From the NCBI GenBank assembly GCA_037447605.1, contig CM074812.1, positions 2,480,001-2,544,000 of the forward strand: a stretch of DNA of 64,000 nucleotides, given 5' to 3'. Shown piece by piece: positions 15,401 through 18,400 of the stretch; the stretch's first letter is position 1, and the number at the start of each line of letters is the position of its first letter. The DNA is from Zygnema circumcarinatum SAG 698-1b (taxonomy: Eukaryota > Plantae > Zygnematophyceae). Under the pieces are notes generated by a model. The model had not been told where the DNA came from. It did not search any database and saw only the letters and a list, made by a program, of their open reading frames with translations. The position numbers were made by a program, and so were the translations under genes.

Positions 15401-18400
15401 GAGGCTGATTTGTAACTCACTTCAGAATGAACTTTAGGTTATAGGGATATTATGCTTGTGATCATTTTCAATGTTCATGAATAATATTTTCAGTTTGTGC
15501 CCACACGCTCACAATGTACAGGGGAAGAGTGCCAATTCATGTGTGGGGGACAGAGGGAGAGAGGGTGAGGGAGGGGGACGAGAGAGAGGCAAATGCGAAA
15601 TCGGTAGCTGGTAGGCATTTCAATTTAAAGAGAATAAAAAATAAAGTACAGAAAGAGAGGTTTGGCGTATTATATTCTCTCTCAAGTGTTGACTTGTCCT
15701 TCTTTTTTCTCTCTCTCAACGATCTTTCTTCCCGCCACACTCCCTCCCCACTCCCTCTCACTCTCCCTCTCCCCCTGTCTTCCCCCTTCATCCGACCACC
15801 TTTCCTCTCCTAACCCGCCTCTCTCCCTAAACCCCCTCCCACCCCCCCTCTCTCTCGTCCCCCTCCCTCCCCCTCCCCCTTACTTCCCCACTCCCTCCTC
15901 TTTCTCTCTCCCCCCTTTCTTCTCCCTCCCACCTTCCGTCCCCCCCCTTTCCCTCTACCTTCCCCTCCCCTTCCATCCCCCCCTCTCTCTCCCTCCCCCC
16001 TCCCTCCCCCTCTTACTCTCGCCCACCCTCCCTCCCCCTCCCCCTTCCGTCCCCCCCGCTCCCTTGCCCTCCCCTTCCCTCCCCCTTGTCACTCCCTCCT
16101 CCCTCCCTCGCCCCCCCACTCCCTCCTCCTTCCCGTCTTCCCCTCTCTCCCTCCCACTCACCCCCCTCTCTCCCTCCTCCCTCCCTCCCCCCCGTCTCTC
16201 CCTCCTCCCCCCTCCCCCCCCGCTCTCTCTCTCCCTCCCTCCCTCCCTCCCCCCCTCTNNNNNNNNNNCCCCTCTCTCCCTCCCTCCCTCTCTCCCTCCC
16301 TCCCTCCCCCCCCCAGGCATGCGCCGTCCCTCTTGGAACAAGGCTCTCGCCACTCAGCAGCTTCTCGCCCTCAAGGCGCTCCTTCCCTTCCGCCCGCACG
16401 TGCGAGAGGAGAGGGGGGGAAGCGGCAGCGCTTCAAGCAGCCCCACCTCCGGACCATGTCCCGCCCTCCCTCCTCCTTGGGGCCCTCCTCAGCCCCTCGC
16501 CGGGGAGAGGGAGAGGGAGAGGGAGAGGGAGAGAGTGTACCTCGAGGCTGAGGAAAACGCCGCTCTCACTGCTGCGGCTGTTGCCGTAAAACCCTAAACC
16601 CTAATTTTGTAATCTCTTTCTCTAGAACCCTGAACCCAGAATCTAAATCCTAACGGCCTAGTTTCCTAACGATTTTAGGTTTAGATTGTAAACCCTGGAA
16701 TTTCAGACCCCAAAAGGGTAATTTTTTTCACTTTTTATGTAAGGATTCTGAACCCATAAACAGTTGAAACAGAAGAAGAAGAAGAAACCATGAACAACTC
16801 GAACCAATGCAAATCTTGAATCATTGAGATTTTGAAATTTTGTAATTCTACATATTTTCCGCTAAACCCTAAACCCTGATAGTCTTTGAAGCTTAGAACC
16901 CTAATACAACGTAGAACACAAAAAACATGTCCTAAACATAAACATGTGTCTTTCACTCTCTATCACTTTCAAACTCTAAAATTCTGTTTTTTTTTTTTTC
17001 TTGTAATTCTAGTATCCTCAAGCCACTTCAAATCCTTAAGGTCTTGGGACCCCATGAAGCAATAGAAAGTCTGAAGTTGTTAGAATTTAACCCCCGCCCC
17101 CTTTCCCTCTCCCTCTCTAAACCCTCTCTCTCTTTCTCTGTGTCTTCCTCTGCCCATCCCTCTTCCGATTTCCTTGCCTTTCATTTCCTTGCCGCCTCGC
17201 TTCCCCTCCTCTCCCACCCTCCCTCCCCCGTCCCCTCCCCCTCCCTCCTTCCCTCCCTCTCCGGTTCCCTCCCTCCCTCNNNNNNNNNNGAGAGAGAAGG
17301 GGAGGGGGGGAGGGAGGGAGGGAGGGGAAACGATGGGGAGAGGGAGGGGAAGATTGAGGGAGAGGAGGGAGATGGGGAGAGGGTGAGAATGGGGGAGGGG
17401 TTGATGGAGTGGGAGGGAGGTGGAAGGGGGCAGAGGAAAGGCGAGGGGCAAAGGGGAGGGAGGGGGGAGAGGACGGGGGAGCAGGGGTGGGAGGAGAGGA
17501 GGGGGGCAGGGGAAGGGGAGGGAGAGAGGATGTGGGAGGAGGAAGAGGTAGGGGGAAGGAAGGATGAGAAAGGGAGATGGATGGGAGGGTGGAATGAAAG
17601 GGAGAGAGTAGAATGTGGATCGAGAGAAGAAGGTGCTGAAGGGGGAGGAGGAGAGAAGAGAGGAGGGTGGGAGGATAAAGAATGGAGGGGAAAGAGGAGG
17701 GACGACAACAGAGGGAGGGAGTGGGAGACTCCCATCTCGGTGAATGTGAAGGAGGATAACATGCAGGAAAAGGACTTTGAAAACCCAATTTTCTTAAACC
17801 CTAAAAATCTGCAGAAGGGTTTAAGTCCATGGTGGGAGAGAGGTGTAGAAACAGAACAAAATTTACCCCTTTCGCATTCAGATAATTCCGATTTAATCCG
17901 TTTTCCTTCACAACCCGCTCTCTCTCCTTACTCTCGCTCTCTCTCCCCATCTCTCCCACCGGACTCCCTCTCTCCTTTCTCTCTCCCTCCCCCTCCCTCC
18001 AAGCGCTACAAATCTATGGCTTCTCCGGTTGACCCCCCCACAGAGACTACCATCCCAGATCTCAACTACGTTCCCTCTGCTCCTCTCCCTTCCCACTCTC
18101 TCCCTCTCACACACTCCCCTTTCTCTCCCTCTCTCTCTCCACCTCTCTCTCCCTTCCCTCTCCTCCCTCCTCTTCCCTCCGTCCTTCCCCACAGCTTCTC
18201 TCCCACACCTGGAAGTCATCGCTCTTCAGGTCCCCCTCTCATCCCTTCCAGCAGCTTCCATCCCTCTCTCTCTCTCTCTCCCTCTCCCTCTCCCTCTCCC
18301 GCTCCTGACAACAAATTTATGGGTGGAAAGCGCCCCTCTCCCGCGAATCTCTCCCTTTCATTAAAACTCGATATCAGAAGGGAGGATATTCTGGAGGAGA

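Follow-up and report, generated by a model that had tools for sequence, protein, structure and literature searches.

In Arabidopsis, PPD1 and PPD2 (PEAPOD1/2) have no ERF-associated amphiphilic repression (EAR) motif of their own and reach TOPLESS (TPL) through the adaptors KIX8/9 and NINJA (PMC8836299). A PPD-like gene of the streptophyte alga Zygnema circumcarinatum SAG 698-1b raises the question of whether such a protein could carry its own EAR motifs and reach TPL directly. The gene lies in a 64-kb stretch of DNA (64,000 nucleotides of contig CM074812.1, assembly GCA_037447605.1, positions 2,480,001 to 2,544,000; hereafter the window). An earlier note on this DNA, which started from the Arabidopsis route and whose account of that route is confirmed by the literature (PMC8836299), had listed PDLNYVP and LSLSLKL, plus the weaker LEFRLGL and SLTLGI, as EAR motifs of the protein. 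We find that the long central exon of the gene is coding in the frame of PDLNYVP and LSLSLKL, and sequence comparison makes a convincing case that the two exons upstream of it encode a genuine PPD domain. On balance, we regard the EAR-like strings as probably incidental products of a Leu/Ser/Pro-rich, CT-rich composition in a fast-evolving disordered linker, rather than as selected TPL-docking sites.

Over positions 16942-18861 (640 codons), the exon frame has no stop codon, whereas the other two plus-strand frames hold 25 and 22 and the three minus-strand frames 19, 9 and 18. In shuffles that kept the local composition (blocks of 12, 30 or 60 nucleotides, n = 5000), about 21 stops are expected in the exon frame, and none of the 5000 shuffled sequences was stop-free. 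The depletion is also seen locally. The GA-rich block of the exon has no stop in frame against 5 and 4 in the other plus frames; over 17731-18003, these frames hold 4 and 6; and over 18331-18861, where only the exon frame is open, they hold 7 and 9 (P 0.0002-0.0008). The frame depletion over 18004-18642 has a P value of 0.0012-0.0016. Moreover, among the stop-free stretches of at least 200 codons in the window, frame-specific stop depletion is unique to the central exon, the others being open in all frames.

The window is rich in GA-rich and CT-rich low-complexity DNA, which leaves many frames open, and we considered such openness as the sole cause of the open frame. This explanation is true for 17897-18361 only, where the three plus-strand frames are all stop-free; for the whole exon, the stop counts, compared frame by frame, reject it. 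Taken alone, the CT-rich block around PDLNYVP is little informative, and it has coding blocks in the same frame on both flanks. A fold-back intron at 17290-18330, GA-rich in its 5' half and CT-rich in its 3' half, was also considered and judged unlikely, since the inverted repeats there show only the generic 70-75% pairing of low-complexity DNA and since stops are missing from the GA-rich and the mixed blocks solely in the exon frame.

PDLNYVP and LSLSLKL are translated, as the earlier note had supposed, in a single plus-strand frame of an exon whose coding status is statistically supported and which belongs to a gene with a PPD domain (Table 1). All the strings of the central exon lie in the plus frame whose codons start at positions equal to 1 modulo 3. 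LSLSLKL was found exactly where it had been placed, and LEFRLGL is present in the frame common to the two main strings. For PDLNYVP, the span given earlier (18058-18075) is right for the core DLNYVP, but the full string begins one codon before it. SLTLGI is present too (19254-19271), but it belongs to a separate exon read in another frame and not to the central exon. With respect to the LxLxL or DLNx(x)P patterns by which EAR-motif repressors are recognized, LxLxL is found at 17101 and 18349/18355 and DLNxxP at 18058; the first of these sites belongs to PLSLSLSK, an additional string that had not been listed before. LEFRLGL falls outside the LxLxL pattern, its position three being Phe, and it would be translated only if the exon reaches the donor at 18861; it is similar to the (E)LRLGL cores known from Aux/IAA proteins. 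The residue before DLNYVP is Pro, not Leu or Phe, and PDLNYVP is surrounded by a small mixed-composition island (KRYKSMASPVDPPTETTIPDLNYVP) within a Pro/Ser/Leu-rich tract, while LSLSLKL adjoins a short predicted helix, DIRREDILEER.

Homology searches were run exon by exon, and Arabidopsis PPD1's PPD domain, as quoted in PMC8836299, was used as reference. In BLASTP, exon 1 matched this domain with 14 of 24 residues identical and 21 of 24 positive (E 1e-8), and exon 2 matched residues 30-40 with 9 of 11 identical (E 3e-5). The two halves join exactly at the Arabidopsis G/M position through a phase-1 intron, and a hand alignment of the whole domain gives about 31 identical residues of 47. This hand count (~66%) exceeds the identity to Arabidopsis reported for the putative PPD domains of Marchantia (38%) and Sphagnum (54-59%) (PMC8836299). 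By this homology, the protein would be a nuclear scaffold or repressor of the PPD type. So far, land plants are the only reported source of PPD (PMC8836299), and our literature search found no report of a PPD domain in a streptophyte alga, the source of the present gene.

The other hallmarks of the TIFY family are less clear. A match to TIF[F/Y]xG was absent from all six frames of the 64-kb window, and Pfam gave no tify or Jas hit in the relevant open stretches of the gene. By eye, ANAVILLARTL (from 19155 on) is similar to the C-terminal helix or end of a ZIM domain, a likeness unconfirmed by Pfam. Likewise, SPMLRQASTFLEER (19483-19524) looks similar to a shortened Jas core and follows the previous exon in phase, and it has no Pfam match.

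From splice consensus and phase, we infer the exon borders and the membership of all exons in one transcript. The proposed donor of exon 2 is GCC/GTAAAA, of phase 0, and an alternative at 16400 is of phase 0 too. Upstream of its assembly gap, the central exon is open only in the exon frame, contains no ATG and has an acceptor whose phase is compatible with exon 2; the two sides of the gap are separately open only in the identical frame. At its 3' end, the strong donor at 18861 is of phase 2, whereas the ZIM-like reading needs phase 0 at 19155; the exon that starts at 19481 is itself in phase with the exon at 19155-19278 (G+GT = Gly). The central exon has two alternative phase-0 donors, at 18601 and at 18643 (ACA/GTGAGT). 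The conflict could possibly be explained by the use of one of these, by an exon lost in the gap at 19021-19030 or by a one-base error in a run of nine G, and every one of these solutions leaves 18004-18642, with PDLNYVP and LSLSLKL, in frame. The run (18820-18828) lies 32 nucleotides upstream of the CAG/GTGAGA donor, and a base-calling error in it is possible; one extra G would turn the 18861 donor into phase 0 and join ...GIGREQ to ANAVILLA. We take this junction to be similar to the E-K-A-x-x-I-M-x-L-A end of the ZIM domain.

The intron between exons 1 and 2 is AT-rich, with a T-rich tract at its end. It contains two 1688-nucleotide copies (12873-14560 and 14571-16258) with 0 mismatches and a 10-N gap at the end of each. 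This duplicate is almost certainly an assembly duplication, so that intron 1 is probably about 1.8 kb long, not 3.5 kb. Finally, GA-rich tracts follow the donors and CT-rich tracts run up to the acceptors (12776-16316, 17290-18300 and 18861-19154), and tracts of both kinds are coding as well, in exons 1 and 3.

Table 1. Proposed exons, assembly gaps and EAR-like strings of the PPD-like gene. Positions are those of the window; a slash marks a splice junction.
Feature	Position	Strand	Description
Exon 1	12466-12775	+	ATG; Glu/Arg/Gly-rich low-complexity lead; N-terminal PPD half (LQDFTEEEILQLTREECRRYLKEE); donor AAG/GTGAGT, phase 1
Exon 2	16317-16585	+	Acceptor cag/GC; split codon G+GC = Gly; then MRRPSWNKALATQQLLALKALL, C-terminal PPD half, followed by linker
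Exon 3 (central)	17023-18860	+	~613 codons; acceptor ctcaag/CC after T-rich tract, phase 0; donor CAG/GTGAGA at 18861, phase 2
10-N assembly gap	17280-17289		Within the central exon; frame continuity across it assumed
10-N gap	19021-19030		In the intron between the central and the next exon; possible site of a missing TIFY-motif exon
Exon	19155-19278	+	Reads ANAVILLARTLSTGIREAKPLSPSNLGVGGEAASLTLGIRS; acceptor ctctcag/GC, donor G/GTGAGT; holds SLTLGI
Exon start	19481-19524	+	Reads (G)SPMLRQASTFLEER, Jas-like by eye; read to 19524
PLSLSLSK	17098-17121	+	Additional LxLxL; surrounded by CT-rich DNA, upstream of the N gap
PDLNYVP	18055-18075	+	Sole DLNxxP-type string of the exon
LSLSLKL	18349-18369	+	LxLxLxL type; codons ctc tcc ctt tca tta aaa ctc
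LEFRLGL	18745-18765	+	In predicted helix 248-256 of the structure model

The product of the central exon is a low-complexity linker of about 600 residues, dominated by S, G, E, P, L and R, and it is predicted to be disordered. AlphaFold2, run with no alignment, gave a mean predicted local distance difference test (pLDDT) score of 46.8, no fold and three short helices, a single-sequence model of this kind being weak evidence. The exon matches no Pfam family. No relatives were found in a word-indexed search of 5.8 billion clusters, which was limited to proteins of 213-677 amino acids, a range that leaves out the full-length protein at about 900, and an exhaustive HMMER search of 1.84 billion representatives with no length limit gave 0 hits at E 0.001. 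Such an absence of relatives is expected of a fast-evolving linker. A query with the exon 2 region found no match even at E 10, its half domain of about 22 residues being too short for significance in such a library, and an Atlas look-up with the PPD half of exon 1 returned only unnamed clusters below 0.9.

The coding sequence of the central exon also includes a cluster of ACGT cores at 18424-18837, with CACGTG at 18424, TGACGTCA at 18450 and again at 18462, and CACGTGGC at 18830. Both copies of TGACGTCA, which occurs only seven times in the whole window, together form an in-frame 12-nucleotide tandem duplication reading DVSN/DVSE. Telomere-like AAACCCTA (telo-box) is found at 16589-16600 and 16864 in intron 2 and at 17796 in exon 3, among 51 copies in the 64 kb.

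LxLxL occurs at two sites in the central exon. Shuffling residues within local blocks gives a mean of 0.8 sites, with a probability of two or more of 0.17-0.20, and block shuffles of the nucleotides give a mean of 1.0-1.1 and a probability of 0.26-0.32. In the plus frames of the window, the density of LxLxL is 0.55-0.6 per 100 codons, rising to 2.0 per 100 in CT-rich stretches; these densities predict 3.5 (overall) to 4.4 (CT-rich) sites for the central exon against the 2 seen. LxLxL is thus at or below background and is not enriched. Elsewhere in the green lineage, EAR patterns are found in 6370 of 24674 proteins of Marchantia and 7196 of 19526 of Chlamydomonas (26-37%), and <1% of the pattern-bearing proteins were classed as EAR proteins (PMC6283911). 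PDLNYVP, for its part, has no Leu or Phe at its flanks, unlike the classic (L/F)DLN(L/F)xP form, and DLNxxP, although nominally unusual, is a single instance that emerged from a scan for several motif types. The strings would thus arise from the Leu/Ser/Pro-rich, CT-rich composition of a long coding exon. We infer that they have no motif function; as far as the sequence goes, a built-in repressor function is possible.

Several observations weigh against this incidental origin. Both main strings lie in or beside islands of mixed composition and not in pure CT repeats, and working short motifs sit in disordered linkers. DLNxxP occurs three times in the six frames of the 64 kb, with a P of 0.001-0.013 in the exon shuffles. 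A TIFY motif, to which NINJA usually docks, was not found in the window, and so the usual adaptor route may be missing. Moreover, MdMYB6, several MYB S22-like proteins and ZmJAZ23 have LSLSL as their listed EAR motif, and DLNxxP cores that are not flanked by Leu are listed as well (DLNELP of Jsi1 and DLNVEP of NRR) (PMC9956375). Finally, TPL is reported from all green plants examined, whereas NINJA is reported chiefly from land plants (PMC8079949).

In the likelier of the alternatives, at least one of LSLSLKL, PDLNYVP and LEFRLGL is a working EAR motif, and the protein would recruit TPL directly, bypassing NINJA and KIX adaptors, much as Arabidopsis JAZ8 does. We consider it possible but doubtful. 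In its favour, the strings are translated within a linker predicted to be disordered, their cores are identical or similar to EAR motifs listed elsewhere (PMC9956375), DLNxxP is nominally improbable by chance, a TIFY motif for the docking of NINJA was not found in the window, and JAZ5-8 and JAZ13 provide precedents (PMC6829463). However, LxLxL does not exceed its background frequency, the pattern turns up in one of every three to four proteins (PMC6283911), the flanks of PDLNYVP depart from the classic form, and the searches with the central exon found no relatives.

Known systems show both how close and how far such a protein would be. JAZ5-8, JAZ13 and ZmJAZ23 (LSLSL) are TIFY-family repressors with LxLxL- or DLN-type motifs of their own that recruit TPL without NINJA (PMC6829463, PMC9956375). 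However, their motifs are conserved within orthologue groups, that of JAZ8 has been tested and none of these proteins has a PPD domain, whereas the algal strings are candidate motifs. Since TIFY-family proteins with their own EAR motif are known, the idea is less new than the earlier note had claimed; the concept is not new, and it is the lineage and the subfamily that would be new here. NINJA and KIX8/9 provide the LxLxL that links PPD to TPL in Arabidopsis (PMC8836299), a role that the algal strings would fill in cis; in contrast, the adaptors are proteins of their own that dock through the ZIM and the PPD domain, and NINJA is reported for the most part from land plants (PMC8079949). Arabidopsis PEAPOD1/2 share with the algal gene an N-terminal PPD domain and the order of PPD, linker, ZIM-like and Jas-like parts on one strand, but their linker has about 100 residues against about 600 in the alga, and the algal gene has yielded neither TIF[F/Y]xG nor a Pfam tify or Jas hit. 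The putative PPDs of bryophytes (Marchantia OAE22702.1 and Sphagnum) are likewise PPD-like proteins from outside the vascular plants, with a domain spacing much longer than in Arabidopsis, but they retain recognisable TIFY and Jas* domains (PMC8836299).

A bolder form of the working-motif alternative takes the giant disordered linker, with working EAR motifs docking TPL directly, as the ancestral, adaptor-free form of the PPD-TPL complex, from which the EAR function later moved to NINJA and KIX8/9 in land plants. We consider this form unlikely. Least probable of all is that the PPD-like protein does not include the open frame, which would instead be part of an independent gene with its ATG beyond the gap at 17280-17289, of a recently dead gene or of an intron-broken stretch; the claim that the PPD-like protein has EAR motifs of its own would then be wrong. 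In favour of this reading, the gap does make frame continuity an assumption, the strong phase-2 donor at 18861 is mismatched with the phase-0 exon that follows, 17290-18300 is laid out like an intron (GA-rich 5', CT-rich 3') and Pfam finds no TIFY or Jas domain. Against it, every sub-block shows a stop depletion specific to the exon frame, the GA-rich block (0 against 5 and 4) and the two flanks of the CT-rich block among them, the part before the gap can be read without stops in this frame only, has no ATG and has an acceptor phase that fits exon 2, and order and strand match the succession PPD, linker, ZIM-like and Jas-like.

The rest of the window holds further open stretches, whose appearance was judged by eye only (17-625, 6019-6282 and 37464-37673 on the plus strand, 58756-59647 and 43431-43940 on the minus strand). 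They resemble exons of an O-GlcNAc transferase (SEC/SPY type), a FabG-type short-chain dehydrogenase and a ubiquitin-like activating enzyme subunit, and one looks like a retroelement fragment.

Taken together, the solid result is a truly coding central exon in an algal gene with a well-conserved PPD domain, and the EAR reading of this exon is a pattern match at background frequency. Should one of the strings work nonetheless, the PPD repressor module would have begun before land plants as a single self-sufficient protein, to which adaptors were added later, and this would be a step in the wiring of plant growth repressors.

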